Below, one piece after another: positions 3,201-52,503 of a DNA stretch of 57,656 nucleotides; the first letter of the stretch is position 1; each line of letters starts with the position of its first letter. The notes under the pieces are model-generated. The model saw only the letters and a list, made by a program, of their open reading frames with translations, was not told the DNA's origin and searched no databases. Origin of the DNA: Guillardia theta CCMP2712 (Eukaryota; Protista; Cryptophyta); NCBI RefSeq assembly GCF_000315625.1, contig NW_005434642.1, positions 162,446 through 220,101 of the forward strand, given 5' to 3'. The translations under genes were made by a program, and so were the position numbers.

Positions 3201-6064
3201 CTGGAAATTGTGATGATGCTGATTACTCGAGGAGTGAAGCAGGTAAGTGCAATGATGTCTCTTCTCATCGGTATGAAGGCTGTGCTGTCTTTGAGTTGTT
3301 AGTTTTTACCTCGTCGTCAACACAAGTTTATGTCCAACATGCTCTGCTTGTTTGTTCGCTGTTTGCTGCCAAGCTTTTAATCTTTTCTGATCGAAGTTGC
3401 TCAGGTGGAGGTTGAGCAATACCGATGGCAACAAGAGGAATGGCAAAAGATCTGGGATCTTGGAACGATCAGAACATTGTCAAACGACAAGTATGGGAGG
3501 TATGCCGATGAAACTGAGGGAGAAGACAACTACAACTGGAGGAGAGACGATTGCGATCAAGAGAAGTGGATCATTGTCGAAACTTTCCTGTTTGTTGCAA
3601 ACCTCGCCATCAGTGAAAGCTTCAGGAGCAAGCTAGTGGAGAGATCGAAGACGATGATTGAAGTGATGCTGGCGATGATGGAGTTGCCCTTCTTGCTTGT
3701 CAAGTCGGCAGCGATGAGAGCTCTCGGTGCCATCTGCTGCAACTCAGAGGTCCTCTCAGAGAAAGTCTGCAGAGACAACGAGGGCATGAAGAGGATGTTG
3801 GTGACGTGCTTGGAGGAAGAGGAGGTGAACGAGGATGTTGTCTTCTACATGTCACGGGGGCTGCTCAATATCTGTGACTCATCTCATATTGCAAAGAAGA
3901 TCTTGAGCTCAGATGAAGCAAACCTCGACATGCTGACCCGAGTTGCTATGAAACGAGCAAACATGTCAGCGATGGGTAACTTCTGCTATCTGTTTGCAAA
4001 TCTTGTCGAGTTCGACGATGTAACGCTCAAGAGAGTATCGGACAGCGAAGCTTCAATCAGTCTTCTCATACAATCACTGCAACAAGATGGAAATCAGTTT
4101 GCTGTGAGCCATTCAGCTCGAGCTCTTGCTGCCATCGTCGAGAACGATCCGAGGAGAGGAGATGCGATGTTGCAAGATTTTCAACTTGTTGAGAAGATCG
4201 TCTCCCACCTCGTCGTTGACAACGACAAATCAGTTGCGCATGTGTGTAAGCTGATCAAGAGCTTTTGCTCGCCTAAGAAGCAATCAAACCTTTCTGTCCG
4301 TCATGTCTTGCGACGCAAACATCTTCTCGGGCAGAAGTTTGACTGCGTCAACAAGATCGTTGACGTTGCTATGAACTCAAGTTCGAACGTCAGGCTGAAT
4401 GCACTGAATGCGATTCTTGCAGTCATGTCACATCACAAAGACAACCTGCAAACTTTTATTTGGTGAGAACAAACTCCCCCCTCTCTACCTTTCTCCCTCC
4501 CTCTTGCTCTCTTCGATTTTGTTGCAATTTTCATCCAACCTCCTCGTCCCTCCTTGTCTGCCCCTCTCTCTCCTTCTTCTCTTCCTCGTCCTTCCTCTCC
4601 AGTTTTCCCACCCCTCTCCTCTCCTCTCCTCTCCTCTCCTCTCCTCTCCTCTCCTCTCCTCTCCTCTCCTCTCCTCTCNNNNNNNNNNNNNNNNNNNNNN
4701 NNNNNNNNNNNNNNNNNNNNNNNNNNNNNNNNNNNNNNNNNNNNNNNNNNNNNNNNNNNNNNNNNNNNNNNNNNNNNNTTGTAGGGCTCATCACCCCTTT
4801 TGAAGGATACGAAGCACGAGCGTCCCCGATGTCTCACCTACTCCAGTCTCTCCACACCGAAGGAATAGTACGCCGCACCTCTTGTCCTTGCATCCCCTCA
4901 TTTCCCGTCCACCCTAGTAGGTCATACTCTAGCGCGCACCTGCCAGAGGAGAGGAGAGGAGAGGAGAGGAGAGGAGAGGAGAGGAGAGCAGGGAGGAGAG
5001 TTGACGTTTTTGACAGGCGGCAAGGTGTATTGAGATGATCGCCAGAAACGAGTTGGAAAAGGTTGAGAAGCTGATTGACGACGTGTTCACTCTGCGATCC
5101 AAGGTCAATCAAGTTCTGCATCCTCCGCTTGTTTTGTCGTTTGTTGTCGACCTCGAAGACTTTGTCGTAGCAGCGAGCGAGGAGGAGGAGATGGTCAAGA
5201 AGGCTTTTCATCAGTCAGCCGCAGAGTTCGAGGGGGTCGAGGTGACGGATGCAAGGGTCAAGGGCTTCCAAGGGGACGAGAACAGCACGAGGATGGAGCT
5301 TGCCGTCGAGTTTGACACGAGCGAGAAAACAGAGAAAGAGATCAACTTGGCGTTTGATAATTGGATGGAGAAGCAAGCTTTCAGCAAGTGCTTGACGGTG
5401 AGTTATGGACCAAGTTTGCAGATAGAAAGCATGATGGAAACGATTGTGATGAAGATGACAGAAGAACAGAGGCATTTTCAAGGCAGATGAGGGACGGGGG
5501 GAGGAGGAGAAGGAGGGACAAGAATGAAAAAGAAGTGCTAATGATAGCGGATATGTGAGGTTATCATGTCTAACAAGAGATTGTTTCTTCGCAACACAGA
5601 ACTTCGGGATGATTGTCAAGAGGGCGAAGTTGGTCGGAGCTGTTCGCATGGCTAGCAAGGAATCTCTCTCTGCAAGCAGCTTCCTCAAACTGGTTTGTGT
5701 GCAAACATTCAATCTTAGTGCTTCTTGCTGACAAGAGGCTGATGGCAGTTGGAGAAGTTCAAAGGATATCAAGAACTGTTGAGCAACATGGAAAACATCG
5801 ATGAAGGCAGATTGCACAAATTCATGTCGACAATTTCAAACCAGTATCTAGCGGAGCTTGTGAAGGATGAAGACAAGGAGGACGAGGACGAGGACGCGGA
5901 GGAGGAGGAGGACGAGGAGGAAGGAAAAAGGAGTATCGACAGGTCGTGGGAGAGATTGTGCTTGCAAGGCATCAAGTATGCTATGGGTGAGGTGTTGGAG
6001 GTTGCAGAGGAGAGGATGGGAGAAGAGCAGCAGGATGGGAAGGCGACAATGAGTGAAATGGTGA

Positions 6065-21820: not shown

Positions 21821-24079
<2,259 letters not shown>

Positions 24080-27758: not shown

Positions 27759-28079
27759 TCTACTCTTGCTCCTCTTGCTCTTTCTACTTCTCCTGCACCT
27801 CCTGCTCTCATTATCCTGCTAGTCCCGCTCCTGCACCTCCTCCTCCCTAGCACCTCACGGCATTGCGGCTCCTCCAGCATGTTGATCCCGACTACCCCGT
27901 TGTCCCTATACCCCCCACCCTCAATTTTATCACCCTACCCCACTCTTATATTGAAACTTCAACGAGATTTTCAATCAAAGTACCCCACTTGAAAAGTGAG
28001 TACCCGTGATGTCAAATTGCACCCACCCCCAACTCATCCCCCGCCTATCACTACACTTGTTTTACTGCGAACGGGGGCC

Positions 28080-31000
28080 ATGGCGAGTGGGCGGAGCCTT
28101 GCGAGGCCTTTCATGGCGCGAGGGAGCGGAGGAAGCATGTCGACTGTCCTCACCTCCTCCTCCTCGCCGTCATCTCTGACGATCTCGTACCTCTCCGCCT
28201 CCTCCTGCACCAGCACCTCCCATGGTGGTCAAAGCAGCAGTTGCAGCGACAGGACGAGAAAATCCCCCGCGCTTCCCCACATTAGGACGCAGAGGAGATG
28301 CTTCCCGAGCTCCTTGGCACAAGGATCAGCTCGTGTGTTCTTCATGCCGCTGGCAGCGGCATGGAGGCGGCAGCAACTCTCCAAGATTAGAGGATGCAAG
28401 TCCAGAATAACAGAGACCAGCGTGCCATCCAGGGGCTTCACACAGACTTCAGTCCTGCCTGCAGCAAAGACTTTGGACAGGGTGATGATGAAACAGCTAT
28501 CGGTGCAATGTGTCATAGGCTGCAACCCGGATGAACGAGACATGTTGCAGGAGCTCGTGATTTCCATCTCAGTCTTCACCGATCTCAGGAAGTCCCTCGG
28601 GGAGCACGTGAAGAAATGCGACGTCCTGGACGAGATGAAAGTTCGGGCGCAGTCGCCTGACTGGGCTTTGCATGCAGCATCGGAGTTGGCAGGAACGCAC
28701 AACTACTCGACCTTGGCGAAGATAGCAAGAAGGATAGCGGAGGAGGGAAAGTTCTTTACGATAGAGGCGCTGGCCGAGTGTATCTCCCGTGAGGTGATCG
28801 TAGAGTGTAACGCAAGGAGGGTGACTGTAGAGATCGACAAGCCTGCTGCCTTGAGGAAGAAGGGAGCCCGGGCTGCAGCTGTTGAGATCACTCGCGATAG
28901 AGAGGACTTCATCTTCAGCTCCTTGCCCGAAAACCCCGACCATGGCAAGGCCGTGAAGCAGCATGATGCTGTCTTCCATCAGCTCTCTGCTCAGCATGCG
29001 GCAGCGACTGAGCCGATTCAACTGCATCCCAACGTCGCCATGATTGCATTGGGCTCAAACGTTGGGAACAGACCGCAGAACATCCAATCAGCTCTGAAGC
29101 TGCTGGAGACGAACAAGTGTCAGGTCCTAGCCACATCCTTCCTCTACGAGTCGCCCGCCTCCTACGTGACCAATCAGCCTTCTTTTGTGAACGCTGCGTG
29201 CAAGATCGCGACATCTCACGGGCCCGACGAGCTACTCAAGGTGTTGAAGGTGTGCATGTCAGAATACCCGACGTTCTGTCAGCTGATCAGAGTTTTACAT
29301 CTCCAGGTCATCGAGAAAGAAGTAGGAAGGCAGGAAAGATTCAGGTGGGGACCTCGAGAGGTCGATCTAGACATCTTATTCTACAATCACTCGGTATGCC
29401 GTCAAGTGAAGCTGCTTGCGACAAGTCTCAAGCTCATTGCAGGTCTACGAGAACGCTGACCGGACGCTCACTATTCCCCATCCGCGGGTAAGCTCCCTCC
29501 TCCTTCGAGCCCTCCTCCGTCTCTCTCAGACACCTGCTCATCTTCGACCTGTCGAACTTGATTGCTCATGTTCCTCCTCCAGTTGTGCGAGAGAGACTTC
29601 GTCCTCGGGCCTATGTGTGATATCGAGCCTGGATGGATCCATCCGGTTCAAAGGAAGCCTGTTGTATCTATCCTCAAGGAATTGCTGCAGAGCCAGAAGG
29701 TATGAGCAGCACCTTGTTCTTTCCCAGCACAGAAGCATCCTTGACTCTTACTGGCACCTCAACAGGCCGATCGCTGCACTCTGAGCAGGATCTTTCCTGT
29801 GAAACAGAGCGGTTCGAGGTTACAAAAGATGTCAGAGGGAGAGAGTGGAAGTTCAGACTTCATGCCCTTGTCTAGCCGGGGATCTTACACAAGCATCATG
29901 GGCATTCTGAACGTCACGCCGGATTCCTTCTCTGATGGAAACAAGTTCTTCGACCTGCAGTCTGCGGTATCTTGCCTCCCCCCCTTCACCTCTGTATCCT
30001 CCCTCGTCCCTCTGTACCTCTCTTTCATTTTGTTCCCATCTTCCATTCCCCTTCGCTACCTTCCTTCTGTCAGAACCTCTCGTCCTTCCTTCTAAAACTG
30101 ATCCACCCTCCCTGACTTCTTCTGCCCATTCTTACGCTCTTGTTATAGCTTCGACAGTTCAAGAACATGGTGGCTGCCGGCGCAGATGTCATCGATATTG
30201 GCGGCCAATCTACCCGACCTAATGCCAAATACTTGGAGGCCGAAGAAGAGCTCGAGAGGGTCTTGCCGCTGATAGAGGCAGTGAGAAGAGAAGGTGAGGA
30301 GCGGATTGAGGGATGAGTTCTGATGGCCATGGCCAGGGATTGACACCCTAATCTCGATCGATACCTTTCATAGTGCGGTGGCAAAGAAGGCAATAGAAGC
30401 TGGGGCAGACATGATCAATGACGTTTCAGGTGGTCTCTTGGACCCCAAAATGCTCGAAGTGGCGGCCGCTCTACATGTAACACGTCTGCCCTTTGTTTCT
30501 CTGCCGTGCTGAATTACGCCTTCTCCATGCTCAACCCTCGCCTTGGTTTCCTCCTCTTCTTCCTCTTCTTCCTCCTCCTTCTTTCCTTCTCTCGGCATGT
30601 CACTTCCTTTCTCTTTCCCTCTTCTCTCGTTACTTCAGGCTCCCATCTGCCTCATGCACTACAGAGGCAATGCGGCGTCCATGCAAGATCTTTGCAACTA
30701 TCCTGTGAGAAGTCACTGCCACCCTTGGACTCGCTCATCTCTACGTCCACAGGAAGATCTCGTTGCCGCCGTTGCGTCGGAGTTGCGCAGTCAGTGCAAC
30801 GCGGCGTTGAAGGCGGGGGTGGTGAGTCGAACAGGAACGAGGTTGTGCTTGCTTGCCTGACGTCCTAACAGCCCAAGTGGAACATTATCGTCGATCCCGG
30901 CATTGGCTTCGCAAAGACATCAGAGCAGTCGGTCGCTGTGCTGAGAGACGCGAGAAGGTTTCAGGACCTCACCTCCCCCTTTGGAGATGTTGTACCGCGC

Positions 31001-44470: not shown

Positions 44471-44517
44471 TTACGGATACCCTCCACGGATACCTCACAC
44501 GGATACCTCACGGATAT
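44471..44517. promoter_or_regulatory. Phased CGGATA array x4 just upstream of the phosphatase ATG
   Basis: CGGATA at 44474, 44487, 44500 and 44511. Regulatory role is inferred. Confidence 0.45.
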
Positions 44518-45244: not shown

Positions 45245-46096
45245 TTGATAATGTTTACTTGGGCTCTTTCGCTCTCAACGGAAGCCAAAGGGGGAGGGAG
45301 CACTTGCACTGGTCTGCAGGATTGTATCCAGGTCCCCAGCACTCCGGGTAAATCCAACGGTCCTTTCCTGTTGCCAAACCTGCTGTTTGGTTACAGCGAT
45401 CTCGAGCCATACATTGATCAGGCGACGATGATGTATCATTACAACAAGCACTTCAATGGTTACATGACCAACCTCAACAACGCGTTGAAGGGAACGCTCA
45501 GCGCGAATCTGACCGAGCTTGTCTTGAATCCAACTGACTCGACGATAAGGAACAACGGAGGAGGATTCTACAACCATGGTTTGTTTTTCCGGATCATGTG
45601 CACTGCGAGTAGGTCGGAGACTCCGTCGAAGCTTCTAGAAGATGCCATCATAAAGTCATTCGGATCAATGGCACAGATGAAACAACAGTTTGCAGCTCAG
45701 GCTTCGTCTCGGTTTGGGTCTGGCTGGGTCTGGCTGGGTGCCTTTGATCTTGTGTGGGTGAAGATTATGACGTTTTATATATGTAGGTGTTCTGCCTGAT
45801 GGAAAACTAGGAATTACAACAACAGCAAACCAGGATACTCCGTTCATGAAGGTACAAGACATACAGTATCAACTGATGTATCCCTTCCTGGGCCTGGATG
45901 TTTGGGAACATGCATACTACCTCAACTACCAGGTGAGCGTGCAAGTTGAGAGGGTTAGGCTGCTGACATGTGACCGTAGAATCAGCGCTCTTCCTACGTA
46001 GACGCCTGGTGGAACATTGTAAACTGGAGTCAAGTGTCATACTACTACGAGAAATATGCTTCCAAGGGACAAGTTGTACCTTGGATACAAGAGTGA
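45245..46096 (+). CDS. Fe/Mn-family superoxide dismutase (Mn-type signatures) with a hydrophobic N-terminal extension
   Basis: LEPYID...[43 protein letters not shown]; two introns; 5' end uncertain. Confidence 0.92.
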
Positions 46097-46311
46097 AGTC
46101 TCCCAGCCCTCCCTGTTCCCTCTCCTCTCTATCACCTTATCGCCACTCTATTGTTGTTCGGCTCGTAGTGCCACTGGCTCCTTGTTTTAGGTTTTATTCG
46201 TAAGTCAAAGATTATCTTTTATTTTTGTACAACTCCTCAAAAACGAGTTCATCACTGCATAACCGTCGTCTCAGCAAAGCCAAGGAAGCAAGCAGGAATC
46301 ACATAGGTCAA

Positions 46312-48122
46312 CTACTTTTCAGAACTGGACCATTTTTGAGGTGTGCAACACAGTCCCACTTCTTGAGCATGCCCACAGGTATGCTTGCCCCATCCCTTCG
46401 AGAGCATGGTCAGATCGCAGGATAGGCGCATAGCAATAAAATGAGCATCAAGTAAAACTCACCGCATGTTTGCATTCAGAAATATCCTTTTCTTTGCCCG
46501 AGCATCTCACTTTGCTCATCCATATCTTTCCTTGGCCACCAATGTGGTTCTTTCCAGACAAGAAATTCTCAACTTTCTGCCCTTCTCCCTCGAACCCAAA
46601 TGCCTGTAAAGCGATGTGAGAATTGAAGCCAACATTCGAAGACCAAAGAAGAATAATTCGCATCCGCTTCACAAGACATAAAGGAGTGTGTGAGAACAGC
46701 AGTACACGGCATGCTTACCTTGCAAATGGTTCCAGCGTTGCGATCTCCGAATTGGTCGCTGCAAACAGTGCCCCACTTCAACCGTGCTTTAGAATATTGA
46801 CGAAGGAACAAGCGAGAAGAAACCTGATCTTCATGCAGCACTTCGAGCCGGCAAGCACGAGAGTTGCAATCGACAAGGCGCATAGTGCTTGTGCTGGCTT
46901 CAGGGCAGACCCCAGCAGAAGAGTCCCATCCCTCGCTAGGCCCTTGCTCCCCCAAAGGACCAGGCCTGCCGATCACTCCTGCTTCTCCCATGGTGCCTGA
47001 ACAGCACCAGCAAGTGAGTCTCCTTCCCCTTCTCAGCAAGTATCACATCACCTTTCTTTCCTTGCGGGCCCTCTGCCCCCCTTTCGCCTCTCGACCCCTC
47101 GTACCCCGGTGGCCCCATGGCTCCTGGCAATCCCCTAGGCCCAGAAGCACCTTGTGGGCCTGCTCGACGTGTAAGGACTGTACACACAATATGGAAGCTA
47201 TCTACCGACGGGCCCAGTAAGACCGTCCACGCCGTCTACTCCATTCATACCCCTAACACCAGGAACTCCCGGCTCCCCCCTCTGCGGGATGACCGCATTG
47301 ATCTCATCGGTGTCTTCCTCATTGACTTTCTTGACGTCTTGAGAGATAGACTGCACCTGTCATCAACTCATATCAGCCACCATGACAGCAGATTGGTGGA
47401 CCCCGACCTCTTCGTTGACGTAAGTCTCTACAGCTCTATCCGCGTTACTGATGCTGTTCTCCCTCTGAAGAAGCCTCTGGTCATCTGCCTCCACTTGGCT
47501 CAAGTCTTCATCCACTTCCTTCTCCTCTGCCAGAAACTCCCGTGGGACCATCGGCGACTGATCGGCGATCGTGACGCCCTCAGGGAGGGGAGGAAGCTGC
47601 ACCATTCCTGCTCCCCGCATCAATCGCACATTCGCCGGGGCGTATGCGAGCAGCTCCTCTACTCGAACAGGGTTGTAGAGATCCATTCCGGCTAGAGTCG
47701 TGATAGCTGCGAGACCAAGAAGAGTAACGGCGCAGATAGATATCCATCTCGATCGCTTTGCCCCACTGAAATCAGAGTCAGAAAATGGACAAACGAAAAC
47801 AAGAAATGCTATCGCAGGGAGACTAGACGAGTGTGATGCATTGATATCATGCAATCACAATGAAGACAAAAATGATGTTTGCGGAGTTGACAAGGAGATC
47901 ATGGCAAGAGATATGAAGGGAAAGGACAAGGTAACCTTGCAGAGTCTAAGGTTCACAGGCGACAAATCAGTTCAACGTAGAGAGCAGGAGAGTGAGAGAG
48001 TATAGAGGAGATGGAGAGAGATGATGATCATATGAAAAACATCATTGCCACATCATTCGTCCCCACCTCATAGCCATGCCTCCCAGCAGCGGTAGATCCT
48101 CCCCCATTCTTCCTGCCATCAT
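46312..48122 (-). CDS. Type II membrane protein: short N-tail, TM, coiled coil, collagen (Gly-X-Y) and C-terminal SRCR domain
   Basis: [18 protein letters not shown]|[27 protein letters not shown]; acidic heptad stalk; about 28 GXY triplets over three exons; SRCR motifs MRLVD...RLEVLH..|WGTVCSD...ICK|..[19 protein letters not shown]|[17 protein letters not shown]. Confidence 0.85.
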
Positions 48123-48262
48123 GACCTTTCGCCGCAGCTACCACCTACCCCTTTCGATATATGAGAATGAACCCACCCTCTACATTAGGGTTTGAACCAC
48201 CCCTATTTCTCTATTAAAATAACCCTGACCCTCTCGCGAATTTTAAAACGTTGTTCAAGGAC

Positions 48263-48322
48263 TTTACGGATACCGTCGCGGATACTGTCGCGGATAGATC
48301 ACGGATATTTTTTGACGGATAC
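48263..48322. promoter_or_regulatory. Phased CGGATA array x5 between the divergent SRCR and TyrRS genes
   Basis: CGGATA at 48267, 48279, 48291, 48302 and 48316. Regulatory role is inferred. Confidence 0.45.
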
Positions 48323-49083
48323 TTGTGAATTTTTTGTTATTTGCGGAGGAAAAATTTGCATGCGTGTCATGTGGAGGGGAGGGCGAGGGAAGGAGGAGGG
48401 AGCGGGGACGGAGTGTGCTGGTGAAACAGAAGGAAGGAGCGGGAGATAGAATGATACAGTCAGAGATGGTGCGGAAAACAGGTCCAGAAGCAGAGCCAGG
48501 GAAAGTGGGAGGGCCGTGGCTAGAGGCTCATGAGGGGGTCGATGGATGGGAGCTGAGGTACAATAGGTTTGGAGTCAGGGGAAGGGAAGGGAAGTGCTGG
48601 GGCGTCTGCGAGAGGAAATGCAGAGAGTAGGATGGAGGAAGGTGGGCAGGGGGTATAGTTGGAAAGATATTCTGAACGTGAGAGGACCAGGATCCTGTTG
48701 GGACGCAGCAGTAGGGGATAGCCATAGGTCGGTCGTGAACTGAGTTAACGATGAGAGACTAGGAAAGGAAGTAGGGATATTGAAAGAAGAAGATATAGAC
48801 TTAGCAAATGAGGCATAGAATTGGGATCCAAGAACTGTGGGCGGATCTGTATGTATTGGTCAAGGAAGGCAAAAATCTCTATAATGACAAGGATAGGGGA
48901 GGGACAGTTACTGGTCAAACTTTGTGTTGCTGCTGTTGAGCTCTTCGCAGTATTCATTTTTTTGTTTTGCTCTCTAGGCCTCAGGGAAGAAGGCTCAGCT
49001 CATGAGAGACGAGGAAGGAGCTGCTGTGAAGTACTGTGTCTTGAACTTGTAGACATGGCAGGGTCAGGTGTGATGTAGCTAGG

Positions 49084-51692
49084 ATGTTGTCTGAGCGAAC
49101 GAGCTTCAAAGTCCTTTTCCTTGCGTGTTGCCTTCAGATTTGTGCCGAGAAAGTCTTTGCGTCAAGTGGTGTGCCCCTTCCTGTTCTTGCCGAGTTGTAT
49201 CAGAGAAGCAGGATGCATGCCGAGGTCGCGCCGGTGAGTGGAAGCGAGACACTGGTGAAGGATACAAACATAGCACACGAGAAGCTTAGAGGAGGGACTA
49301 ACATCGCCGGATACAACAACTATTCTCTTCCCTTGCTTGCAACCTCAACTCACAATCTGACATCTCCCCCTTGGTGGTCTCAGGGAAAGATGTCGAGCGC
49401 ATGGCAGGCCCAGGCGGAGGCACAGGGGGAGGTTGTCCGCAAGATGAAGGAAGAGATGAAAGCGAACCCGGTTGGTCGATCGGAAGTGAATGTTTTCTCT
49501 TTGATGACATTTCGACTTCAGGCTGCGCATACCAAAGAACAACTGGATGCTGAAGTTGCCAAGTTGAAGGAGCTGAAGGCGAAGGCTGATGTGAGCTTGT
49601 GTTCTTTGTCCAACCTCGTCTTCTTCCTGCACCCCTCCTCCTTCCATTCTTCTTCCTCTCAATTTGTCTCTCCTCCTCTCTCTTGTACCTCGTCTGTTGC
49701 TCTCCTGACCCCAGAATTGACAGGATCCCATGAACGCTCTGGAGGATCCGGTCATCAAGGCGAAGTACCAGCTCGTTAGGAGTGTGGGAGAAGAATGCGT
49801 GAGTAGCACGATTAGAAGCTGGGCGAGCAAGAGCTGAGAGACTGTCGGTGGCAGGTCACGGACGGAGAGCTTGCTCTCCTGCTGTCCAAGAAGCCAGATG
49901 TGAGTGTGTCAAGGTGGTTGTGCGGTGACGGCTGACTGCCCTTACTCAGTCGTTTCGGTTGTACGACGGGTTTGAGCCCTCGGGCCGCATGCACATTGCG
50001 CAGGGCATCTTCAAGGCCATGAATGTCAACAAGTGCACCAAGTCCGGAGGGACTTTCATCTTCTGGGTGGCCGACTGGTTCGCGCTCATGAACGACAAGA
50101 TGGGGGGCGATCTGGAGAAAATCAAGACGGTGGGCAAGTACTTGGTGGAGGTGTGGAAGGCCACAGGGATGGACATGGACAGAGTTCAGTTCGTGTGGAG
50201 CTCGGAGGAGATCGCGTCCAATGCAGTCTCCTACTGGACGCAAGCGCTGGACATCGCGAGGAGGACAACGATCACGAGGGTGAAGAAGTGCTGTCAGATC
50301 ATGGGAAGGTTGGAGAACAAGCTGACGGCAGCTCAGATCCTCTACCCACTCATGCAGGCGACCGACATCTTCTTCCTCAAGGCAGACATCTGCCAGCTGG
50401 GAGTCGATCAAAGGAAGGTCAACATGCTTGCCAGGGAATATTGCGATTCCGCAGGGATCAAGAACAAGCCGATCATCCTGTCCCACCACATGCTGTACGG
50501 CCTGAAGAAAGGTCAAGAGAAGATGTCGAAGTCAGACCCTGACTCAGCGATCTTCATGGAGGACACGGAGGAGGACGTGGCGAGGAAGATCAATAACGCC
50601 TACTGCCCGAGCAAGCCCGAAGATGAAGCCCCTGCAGCGCAGGCCGAGGACATCGACGCTGGTCTTGAAAGTATGCACTTGACCTCCGACGATCTCAAGA
50701 ACCCTTGCCTCGACTACGTGGAGAATATCATCTTCTCTGTGCCCGAGGCCACTTTCACAGCTGGGGGTTCCACTTACAACTCCTTTCAGAGCGTCAAAGA
50801 CGACTTTGTCGCCGGGAAACTGAGCGAGGCAGAGCTCAAGGGCGGATTGATCGCTGCAGTCAACAGGCTGCTGGACCCTGTGAGGAAGCACTTCAAGGAG
50901 GACGCCAACGCCAAGGCCATCCTCGACCAGGTGATGCAGTGGAAGAAGGAGAACCTCGTGCCCCCCAAGGGACTCAAGAGGCTCGTGGCCATGCAGAGCA
51001 GCAAGCCTGTCTGGTGTGTCTTCGCCCCCTACGCCACTGCTGAGATCACCCTGGGCCAGCTGACCTCCATCATCCGCCACCTCCAGCAGGCTCCTGCTGA
51101 CCACCAGAAGGTCTTGTGGTGCCCGGACTGGAGCAGCTTCGCCGTCAACAGCTGCAACGGGGAGCAGAAGGTCATCTCTGCCTGCTACAGCATGATGATC
51201 GAGGCCCTCACGGCTGTGATGCCTGACCTGATGAAGGACGTCAAGGTCCTGATCCAGAGCGAGGCCATTCTCCTCGACCCCTCCCAGTACTGGATCTCCG
51301 TCATCAACGTCGGCCGTCACTTCCAGCTGCAACGGGTGCGAGCGGTGGACGAGGCCAACGAGACGGCCGGCCAGGTCATCGCTGCAATGATGCATGTCGG
51401 CGACGTGCTCGCCATCGCTCCCTCCACAATCTGCTCCTCCCCGGCGGCCAAGGTGGCGCACGAGCTTGCTTGCGACTACATCAAGGAGACGGAGGTCACT
51501 GAGATCGCGGTCCCCGCAGTACATGTGTCTCCTCCTGTCGACTCAGCGTTGAAGCCTCCTCATATGATGGACGGCCCTGCCAACGCCGACGACGAGATCT
51601 ATCTGCTCGACGCCTCCATGGACGTAGGAAGGAAACTGAAGCGCGCCTTCTGTGAGCCGTGAGTGATCTCCTCCTTTTCTCTTTCTCCTCCC

Positions 51693-51776
<84 letters not shown>

Positions 51777-52503
51777 CTTCTTTCTTCTCCTCCAGTTCCT
51801 TCTCCTGTCTCCGTCTCCATTCTCTGACACATTTCTTCTTCCTCCATCACCTGTTCTCACACAACTTGATGCAGAGGAAACGTAGAGCACTGTCCTCCCA
51901 TCACGCTTGTGGATGCCTGCGTCATCTCTGCAGGGAAGGGTCTCGCTATCAACCGCAAGGAGGAGAATGGAGGAGACAAGAACTATGTGTCCATTGGTAA
52001 GCCAACCTTTAAGCTCTTCCTCTCATTCCTCCTTTCCACTATCAATTCCCTTGCTTTCCCTCTCTTTCCTCTCCCTCTTCTCTCCATCCTCTCTCACAGA
52101 CGCATCGATGATCGGGCCCGCATCCTCATCCCCCCACCTCCACTCCCTCTCCTTCCAGGCTCCCCCTCCCCCTCTCATGGAAGATTCTCTATAACGCCTC
52201 CCCTCCATCGATCTTCTTTCCTCCCCTGCTCGATCTTTCACCTTCTCCTCTGCTCACTTCTCCTCCAAGACGACCTTGTCGCCGACTTCAAGTCCGGAGC
52301 TCTTCATCCCGGCGACTTGAAGCCCTCGGTCACCAAGGCGGTGGACGCCTACATGCAGCTCATTCGCGACCGCGTCAAGGCCAACGATGCAGCGAAGAAG
52401 GCGGAGGTGAGGGAGAGCCAGCAGCAGGGGCATGCCCTGACGGTGCTGACAGGCTGAGCTCAAGAACTTCCTCAAGAAAGCAGCGGCCAAGAAGAAGAAG
52501 TGA
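49084..52503 (+). CDS. TyrRS: Eukaryotic/archaeal-type tyrosyl-tRNA synthetase, double-length (pseudo-dimer), with WHEP domain and N-terminal signal-bearing extension
   Basis: YDGFEPSGRMHIAQG, YPLMQATD, LGVDQRK and KMSKS in the first half. Degenerate second half ending KLKRAFCEP|GN...LHPGDLKPSV. WHEP-like QGEVVRKMK...LDAEVAKLKELK after the internal Met at 49390. Confidence 0.93.
51693..51776. repeat. (CTCCTG)n intronic microsatellite
   Basis: Seen directly. Confidence 0.93.

Follow-up and report, generated by a model that had tools for sequence, protein, structure and literature searches.

How a unicellular alga comes to encode a protein with the layout of a vertebrate class A scavenger receptor is the question raised by a gene in a 57,656-nucleotide (nt) stretch of the genome of Guillardia theta CCMP2712 (assembly GCF_000315625.1, contig NW_005434642.1, positions 162,446–220,101 of the forward strand). 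This whole stretch is referred to as the window, and all positions are given in its numbering. Class A scavenger receptors are type II homotrimers, of which SCARA1 and SCARA5 are composed of coiled-coil, collagen-like, and SRCR parts (PMC8353498). Whelan et al. did not find these receptors in non-vertebrate genomes, and the architecture was taken as vertebrate-specific (PMC3567963). An earlier reading of the bare DNA sequence (the original prediction) had placed at 46312–48122 a gene for a receptor of this kind in a probable unicellular alga, with a short tail, a membrane anchor, an acidic stalk, a collagen segment, and one C-terminal SRCR domain. The analysis presented here confirmed this layout on a single mRNA, and the protein is read, with modest confidence, as an SR-A-like protein of the cell surface that was assembled independently, is probably trimeric, and serves recognition or adhesion.

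The final gene model was composed of eight exons on the minus strand, encoding 375 amino acids (aa), and its coordinates were verified via translation (Table 1). The start ATG was located at 48122 and the stop TAG at 46312–46314, in exact agreement with the predicted interval, and an in-frame TAG was found 18 nt upstream of the ATG. A model built from the genome alone contained seven exons with GT-AG introns and 391 aa, and was lowered to 375 aa by RNA contigs. Transcripts were compared over 45500–49000 in four public RNA runs (X1, X2, X5, and X17); X2 and X5 shared one organism label and came from two studies, and X1 carried a second label and came from a third study. The contigs of X1, X2, and X5 were identical to the window, and the predicted introns were spliced out in all three, with the exception of intron 1 in X1. 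The same contigs revealed a seventh intron (joint 46775→46824), which was 48 nt long, in frame, bordered by GT..AG, and located within the SRCR domain. Its excision took out 16 residues and restored the canonical SRCR run LEVLHEDQ/WGTVC (the slash marks the joint). The raw RNA reads of X17, which were 3′-biased, were stacked on the last exons and the 3′ untranslated region (UTR); two of them crossed the joint 46602→46718, and a pile-up at 46202–46435 faded by ~46100. Of the public runs listed, 16 contained the stretch wholly or partly, and 10 of one organism label contained ~47% of its words, which is roughly the expectation for exons only.

The anchor and stalk, the collagen segment, and the SRCR domain are encoded by one mRNA, and the gene is expressed. 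The end of the helical segment and the start of the collagen repeat were both located in exon 3, and the end of the repeat, the linker, and the start of the SRCR domain were all located in exon 5. Since the collagen repeat ends and the SRCR domain begins within one exon, the collagen–SRCR fusion is not an artefact of the gene model. A two-gene fusion artefact was rejected on the basis of these junctions inside exons 3 and 5 and of the presence of all splices in the RNA contigs, which joined the anchor, collagen, and SRCR exons that might otherwise have belonged to separate genes. The RNA check proposed with the original prediction confirmed the introns of the genome-only model in contigs of three studies and added the 48-nt one. 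Introns 3 and 4 each interrupted a glycine codon after the first base. RNA cover was absent from ~48136 to 48366, where it restarted in a different transcript; with cover of the gene ending near 48135, its 5′ UTR is therefore short. The retention of intron 1 in X1 represents either an unspliced precursor or regulated retention; in the retained form, the reading frame would lack the start codon and the tail exon.

The N-terminal part was predicted to share the type II topology of class A scavenger receptors (SCARA1–5), with one helix after a 25-aa tail. The basic residues Lys22, Arg23, and Arg25 were located on the N side of the hydrophobic helix and Asp47 on its C side. When exon 2 alone was modelled with AlphaFold2 in a single-sequence run, helices were obtained at aa 25–48 and aa 103–137, the latter with a predicted local distance difference test (pLDDT) score of ~80 and reaching the exon end. 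The hydrophobic periodicity of aa 94–161 was 3.5–3.6 residues, and the observed value was reached by 0.5–1.4% of shuffles (p ~0.005–0.014). The tail with its EDLPLL motif and the single transmembrane helix, the latter by prediction, were both recovered as originally described.

The collagen segment was a true, uninterrupted Gly-X-Y repeat; its length had been put at about 28 triplets, and the count was 27. The 54 X and Y positions held 12 prolines (7 in X and 5 in Y) and 15 charged residues, with a net charge of −1. When Pfam was scanned exon by exon, the Collagen family (PF01391) matched exon 4 alone with 27.4 bits, against a gathering cut-off of 27.2, and exon 3 with an E-value of 6.7e-4. 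Judged by its sequence, the segment would conform to the Gly-X-Y repeat both of class A scavenger receptors and of the collagen triple-helix repeat proteins in PF01391.

The single C-terminal SRCR domain was likewise recovered in the Pfam scan, and the absence of an SRCR profile match, which would have spoken against the original prediction, was not observed. SRCR (PF00530) matched exon 7 alone with 27.9 bits (gathering cut-off 26.1), and SRCR_2 matched the exon 5–6 stretch with an E-value of 4.4e-4. The four SRCR exons aligned to successive parts of solved SRCR structures. Exon 5 was aligned to the first strand of PIT54, and exon 6 (WGTVCSDQF...ICK) to neurotrypsin and PIT54. Exon 7 was aligned to eight CD163 repeats (E-value 7e-21 overall), CD5L, LOXL2, SR-AI (3e-3), MARCO (2e-2), and SCARA5 (2e-2), and exon 8 to CD163, PIT54, CD5L, DMBT1, SCARA5, M2BP, and SR-AI. 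Residues Cys287, Cys300, Cys335, Cys345, Cys355, and Cys365 coincided with conserved cysteines of CD163, PIT54, and neurotrypsin. The position of the group-B C4 cysteine was occupied by phenylalanine in our reading of the consensus. The core is classed as group-A-like because the partner of the group-B C1 cysteine is missing, and the domain combined the features of group-A members of PF00530, namely the profile match, the six core cysteines, and no group-B C1–C4 pair. An additional C-x4-C pair, Cys268 and Cys273, was lineage-specific, and Cys255 and Cys364 were left as spare cysteines.

The cation sites of the head were mostly replaced. In the SRCR domain of SALSA, Reichhardt et al. described D1019, D1020, and E1086 in site 2 and D1020, D1058, D1059, and N1081 in site 3 (PMC7043408). 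Mutation of the cation site abolished binding, and MARCO uses the same site (PMC7043408). In our mapping, the site 2 equivalents were Ser288, Asp289, and Gln359, with one of the three kept, and the site 3 equivalents were Asp289, Ser331, Lys332, and Thr354, with one of the four kept. The SALSA positions were presumed to fall on the CDD, LDD, HNC, and SED segments of the consensus, as judged from the known features of this domain and from the exon alignments. The sole residue kept was that of D1020 (Asp289), which is common to both sites. Thus, the acidic cluster associated with Ca2+-dependent polyanion binding was not conserved in the alignment, and ligand binding through the canonical SRCR Ca2+ cluster is probably not to be expected.

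All sequence searches for relatives were made with single exons or stop-free pieces of the gene. Exon 2, which carries the anchor and most of the stalk, was compared with 1.84 billion representative proteins, and its sole match was its own 80-aa fragment from a marine metagenome contig; no second copy was found within the window. As far as these comparisons reach, the anchor and stalk are an orphan sequence. A homologue search with the 156-aa stop-free stretch of exons 5–6 and the 74-aa stretch of exon 7 gave none under a length filter of 0.55–1.75 times the query, which excludes full-length relatives. The exon 7 scan of metagenomes matched one locus (L002), which was rejected as unrelated (36% GC, SRCR exons only 32–37% identical). 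This locus is a marine metagenome contig of an unrelated eukaryote, with SRCR-like exons at 714–917 and 3676–3789 that were 37% and 32% identical, respectively. The scan of viral contigs gave no match, and a recent origin of the SRCR domain from a virus is thus unsupported.

Shared ancestry with the vertebrate class A receptors was not indicated by these data, since no similarity was found beyond the two generic modules and the SRCR exons were not closer to SR-A. In the per-exon comparison with PDB structures, SR-AI, MARCO, and SCARA5 scored no better than CD163, CD5L, DMBT1, LOXL2, and neurotrypsin. Independent assembly is favoured because the anchor and stalk are orphan and the SRCR domain resembles other SRCR proteins at least as well as it does the class A receptors. 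Of the two origins offered by the original prediction, "convergently assembled or ancient", the convergent one is favoured on these grounds and the ancient one disfavoured. On the evidence of its sequence, the gene was most likely put together within the cryptophytes from modules that are widespread, and separately from the vertebrate class A receptors.

The genomic context placed the gene in a cryptophyte, in agreement with the predicted algal host. The tyrosyl-tRNA synthetase exon at 49959–51659 shared 94% identity with an MMETSP transcript and 73% with Rhodomonas abbreviata and R. lens (Cryptophyceae). A fused FolB (dihydroneopterin aldolase)–HPPK frame for folate synthesis lay in the same window; such a gene is not known from animals. 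The introns of the scavenger-receptor-like gene were 46–115 nt long, plus one of 301 nt, and resembled the 47–49-nt introns of the neighbouring superoxide dismutase (SOD) gene. Because of the tyrosyl-tRNA synthetase and FolB–HPPK neighbours and the host-like introns, the gene is judged native to a cryptophyte, a non-animal alga, and animal contamination was rejected on the same grounds.

Table 1. Positions of the scavenger-receptor-like gene, its protein segments, and neighbouring genes in the window.
Feature	Position	Strand	Residues	Description and evidence
5′ UTR	48123–48135	−		Short; X2/X5 spliced contigs extend to ~48131–48135; joint 47765→48067 with 65–69 letters beyond
Exon 1	48067–48122	−	1–18	Start codon and cytosolic tail; EDLPLL (aa 8–13) at 48084–48101; splice to exon 2 in X2, X5
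Intron 1	47766–48066	−		301 nt, GT..AG; spliced in X2, X5; retained in X1 contig
Exon 2	47408–47765	−		Juxtamembrane KRSR, hydrophobic helix (47687–47746), Pro-rich spacer, start of acidic helix (aa 94; 47408–47542); no Pfam family
Exon 3	47206–47356	−		End of acidic helix (to aa 161; 47288–47356), first Gly-X-Y (aa 165; 47278); ends within Gly codon, phase 1; Collagen E 6.7e-4
Exon 4	47052–47159	−		12 Gly-X-Y triplets, Gly codon split at both borders; Collagen 27.4 bits, E 2.9e-6
Exon 5	46824–46996	−		Last triplets (aa 245; 46935), 16-aa linker with Cys255, first SRCR strand (aa 262; 46886); aligned to PIT54 SRCR N-terminal strand
Intron within SRCR	46776–46823	−		48 nt, in frame, invisible in purely genomic reading; RNA contigs X1, X2, X5
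Exon 6	46719–46775	−		SRCR WGTVC...ICK segment (Cys287, Cys300); RNA contigs and structure alignment
Exon 7	46463–46603	−		SRCR central part (Cys335, Cys345); SRCR 27.9 bits, E 3.1e-6
Exon 8	46312–46395	−		SRCR C-terminal GWGKHTCGH...CC (Cys355, 364, 365; ends 46345), 10-aa tail, stop; RNA contigs and alignment
3′ UTR region	46097–46311	−		Overlaps 3′ end of convergent Fe/Mn SOD gene; RNA read pile-up
Cytosolic tail			1–25	E8-D-L-P-L12-L13; K22, R23, R25 beside membrane
Hydrophobic helix			26–45	20 residues; Kyte-Doolittle mean 2.05 over 19 residues
Spacer			46–93	6 prolines
Acidic amphipathic segment			94–161	68 aa, proline-free, net charge −14
Collagen segment			165–245	27 uninterrupted Gly-X-Y triplets
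Linker			246–261	Contains Cys255
SRCR domain			262–365	
C-terminal tail			366–375	Ten residues
Fe/Mn SOD gene	within 45500–46311	+		Introns 45737–45785, 45931–45977; stop 46094–46096; Pfam Sod_Fe_C
Tyrosyl-tRNA synthetase gene	49084–52412	+		Several exons
FolB–HPPK gene	27996–29456	+		Fused folate-synthesis open frame

When the algal protein was compared with SCARA1 (SR-AI/MSR1) and SCARA5, the order of the domains was the same, as had been predicted, and it was found on one mRNA. Like these receptors, it is predicted to have a type II single-pass anchor with a brief cytosolic tail and a helical stretch, which are followed by Gly-X-Y repeats and a lone SRCR domain at the C-terminus (PMC8353498). 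The modest length of the collagen segment and the six-cysteine, group-A-like SRCR core were also similar. In contrast, the tail, anchor, and stalk of the cryptophyte protein showed no sequence similarity to those receptors, and its stalk was shorter and very acidic. Its SRCR domain differed in the extra C-x4-C at the start, the terminal CC doublet, the mostly replaced cation-site residues, and the spread over four exons, and the host is an alga. The protein is therefore outside the class A family as far as its sequence can tell, for it shows neither common ancestry with these receptors nor their cation cluster, despite the same design. MARCO also has a type II anchor, a collagen segment, and a C-terminal SRCR domain, which is its ligand-binding part. 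The collagen domain of MARCO is much longer, and its basic RxR motif is absent from the cryptophyte protein. Furthermore, MARCO has no helical coiled-coil region (PMC8353498), and its acidic cluster, which is essential when tested by mutation (PMC7043408), was not conserved in the cryptophyte protein.

Outside the vertebrate receptors, a related description is that of Linden and King, in whose preprint a protein of the choanoflagellate Salpingoeca kvevrii combines collagen and SRCR domains and is judged independent of metazoan scavenger receptors (10.1101/2021.10.08.463732). That protein belongs to another supergroup (Holozoa, not Cryptista), and the likeness to it is by description, not by sequence. 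Collagen domains were reported across eukaryotes in the same preprint, including Cryptista, and a supplementary table apparently flags Guillardia theta as collagen-bearing, in our reading of its unlabelled columns (10.1101/2021.10.08.463732). The architecture had been put forward as undescribed outside animals. With collagen plus SRCR published for S. kvevrii and collagen domains for cryptophytes, this holds only for the complete layout: in the searchable literature, neither the full anchor–helix–collagen–SRCR order in an alga nor any link of SRCR domains or scavenger receptors to Guillardia was found. The membrane collagens XIII, XVII, XXIII, and XXV and the choanoflagellate ChCL also carry an N-terminal anchor followed by an extracellular collagen segment. 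They differ in that their collagen domains are several and interrupted, or that a long non-collagenous part is present, and in having another head or none; the rod of the cryptophyte protein is single and short and bears an SRCR head. Membrane collagens fold from the N- to the C-terminus, nucleated at the membrane-proximal helix. SRCR proteins also occur in green algae and apicomplexans, and with the SRCR proteins of other protists and algae the cryptophyte protein has the SRCR fold in common.

A possible mode of action may be outlined from these comparisons. The 375-aa protein is predicted to reside at the cell surface in type II orientation, with the N-terminus inside and the C-terminus outside. 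By analogy with the folding of SR-A and membrane collagens, the membrane-adjacent acidic amphipathic helix would assemble three chains, whose collagen segments of 27 triplets would then zip into a rod of ~23 nm. Cross-links between the chains may be made by Cys255 of the linker and by the spare cysteine in the CC doublet at the end of the SRCR domain. The three heads would then be held roughly 30–40 nm above the membrane, and the protein most likely is a receptor for multivalent recognition or adhesion. Through its E-x-x-x-L-L motif, the tail would permit adaptor-dependent sorting or endocytosis, if the motif acts like its known counterparts.

Several points weigh against a trimeric recognition or adhesion receptor of this kind. 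The AlphaFold2 run on exon 2 had a mean pLDDT of 62, and the heptad pattern of the stalk was weak, with just 11 of the 19 a/d positions hydrophobic in the best register. Of the "acidic heptad stalk" in the original prediction, the acidity, the helix prediction, and a periodicity above 98.6–99.5% of shuffles stood, and the heptads stood only in part; the segment is called here a predicted acidic amphipathic helix with heptad character, rather than a proven coiled coil. The six-residue dileucine pattern would arise by chance in a 25-aa tail in a few percent of cases, by our estimate. Relatives in other protists may have escaped the piecewise searches. Binding by the head in the manner of MARCO or SALSA is doubtful on sequence comparison, and polyanion binding of that type cannot be assumed because most of the canonical cation-site residues are replaced.

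The degraded acidic cluster also bears on the main rival, a structural membrane collagen instead of a receptor, in the manner of the vertebrate membrane collagens (XIII, XVII, XXIII, and XXV), by which cells are attached to the matrix. In this view, the trimer would fasten the periplast or coat to the plasma membrane, or else serve adhesion between cells, and the SRCR domain would dock a self component. The layout of type II anchor, helix, and collagen is the same as in membrane collagens, and SRCR domains of invertebrates have been associated with cellular recognition and not with the binding of ligands (PMC4491621). However, one short uninterrupted collagen segment with a single globular head is more receptor-like than matrix-collagen-like, and the tail carries a sorting-type motif; a structural role appears unlikely on balance, while deserving serious weight. 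The end of the hydrophobic segment allows another reading, in which it is a signal peptide, possibly cut after TLA (aa 42–44), that frees a soluble "defence collagen", a trimeric collagen–SRCR opsonin or agglutinin. Small residues are present at −3 and −1 (Thr42 and Ala44), and a soluble design is known from collagenous lectins. By the rules for hydrophobic-region length, the 20-residue hydrophobic core and the 25-residue charged N-region fit a signal anchor better, and secretion is considered improbable.

True homology with the class A scavenger receptors of animals, whether inherited from an ancestral eukaryote or acquired from an animal by gene transfer, would account for the domain order identical to SCARA1 and SCARA5 (PMC8353498) and for the six-cysteine, group-A-like SRCR core. 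In the ESM Atlas, the nearest named clusters to the collagen–SRCR junction piece were chordate MARCO-like, with a score of 0.76, which is below the counting level and serves as a lead only. This descent is nevertheless regarded as very improbable: the similarity is confined to the two generic modules, the per-exon scores single out no class A receptor, and the introns and context are of host type. The absence of class A receptors from non-vertebrate animals (PMC3567963) means that descent would require many losses. An independently assembled recognition or adhesion protein thus remains the favoured reading. A broader proposal, which is speculative and which we hold only tentatively, is that the gene belongs to a set of trimeric membrane "defence collagens" in cryptophytes. 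These would all be built on one anchor–helix–collagen chassis and differ in their exchangeable heads (SRCR, C-type lectin, H-type lectin, FN2, and PA14), as an independent counterpart of the vertebrate scavenger-receptor/collectin system that recognises bacteria, viruses, or prey.

The surroundings of the gene showed some further features. The SOD gene converges on the scavenger-receptor-like gene, with a 215-nt gap between the two stops, and RNA contigs ran across both genes. These contigs were read as overlapping 3′ UTRs, and a single transcript spanning both genes was rejected on this reading and on the opposite polarity of the SOD gene's own GT..AG introns. The motif ACGGATAC formed two intergenic arrays on the plus strand with a spacing of 11–14 nt, one at 48267–48321 (five copies), between the 5′ end of the scavenger-receptor-like gene and the next plus-strand transcript, and one at 44474–44516 (four copies), ~1.2 kb upstream of the observed SOD exons. 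Nine of the 19 CGGATA sites in the window fell within these arrays, which may represent a shared promoter element. For tyrosyl-tRNA synthetase, the closest database protein was 94% identical without gaps, the host's own protein not being among those listed; this gap-free match indicates that MMETSP includes a sister species or strain. The relatives of this synthetase carry an additional WHEP-TRS domain (PF00458). An open frame at 21821–22888 on the plus strand contained OTU cysteine protease and phospholipase/carboxylesterase (Abhydrolase_2) domains together.

Class A scavenger receptors have been regarded as a vertebrate invention (PMC3567963), and the same four-part design is now seen in an expressed cryptophyte gene, with no sign of common descent. 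The novelty is tempered by the 2021 preprint with its choanoflagellate collagen–SRCR protein and cryptophyte collagen domains (10.1101/2021.10.08.463732). Should the protein prove to be a surface receptor that trimerises, the combination of coiled coil, collagen rod, and SRCR heads for multivalent recognition would have evolved at least twice, and the gene would provide a way into the question of how an alga closed off under a cover of plates perceives bacteria, viruses, or particles. If the proposal of a repertoire of sibling genes is true, a whole recognition system, instead of a single curious gene, would be at hand in this lineage.

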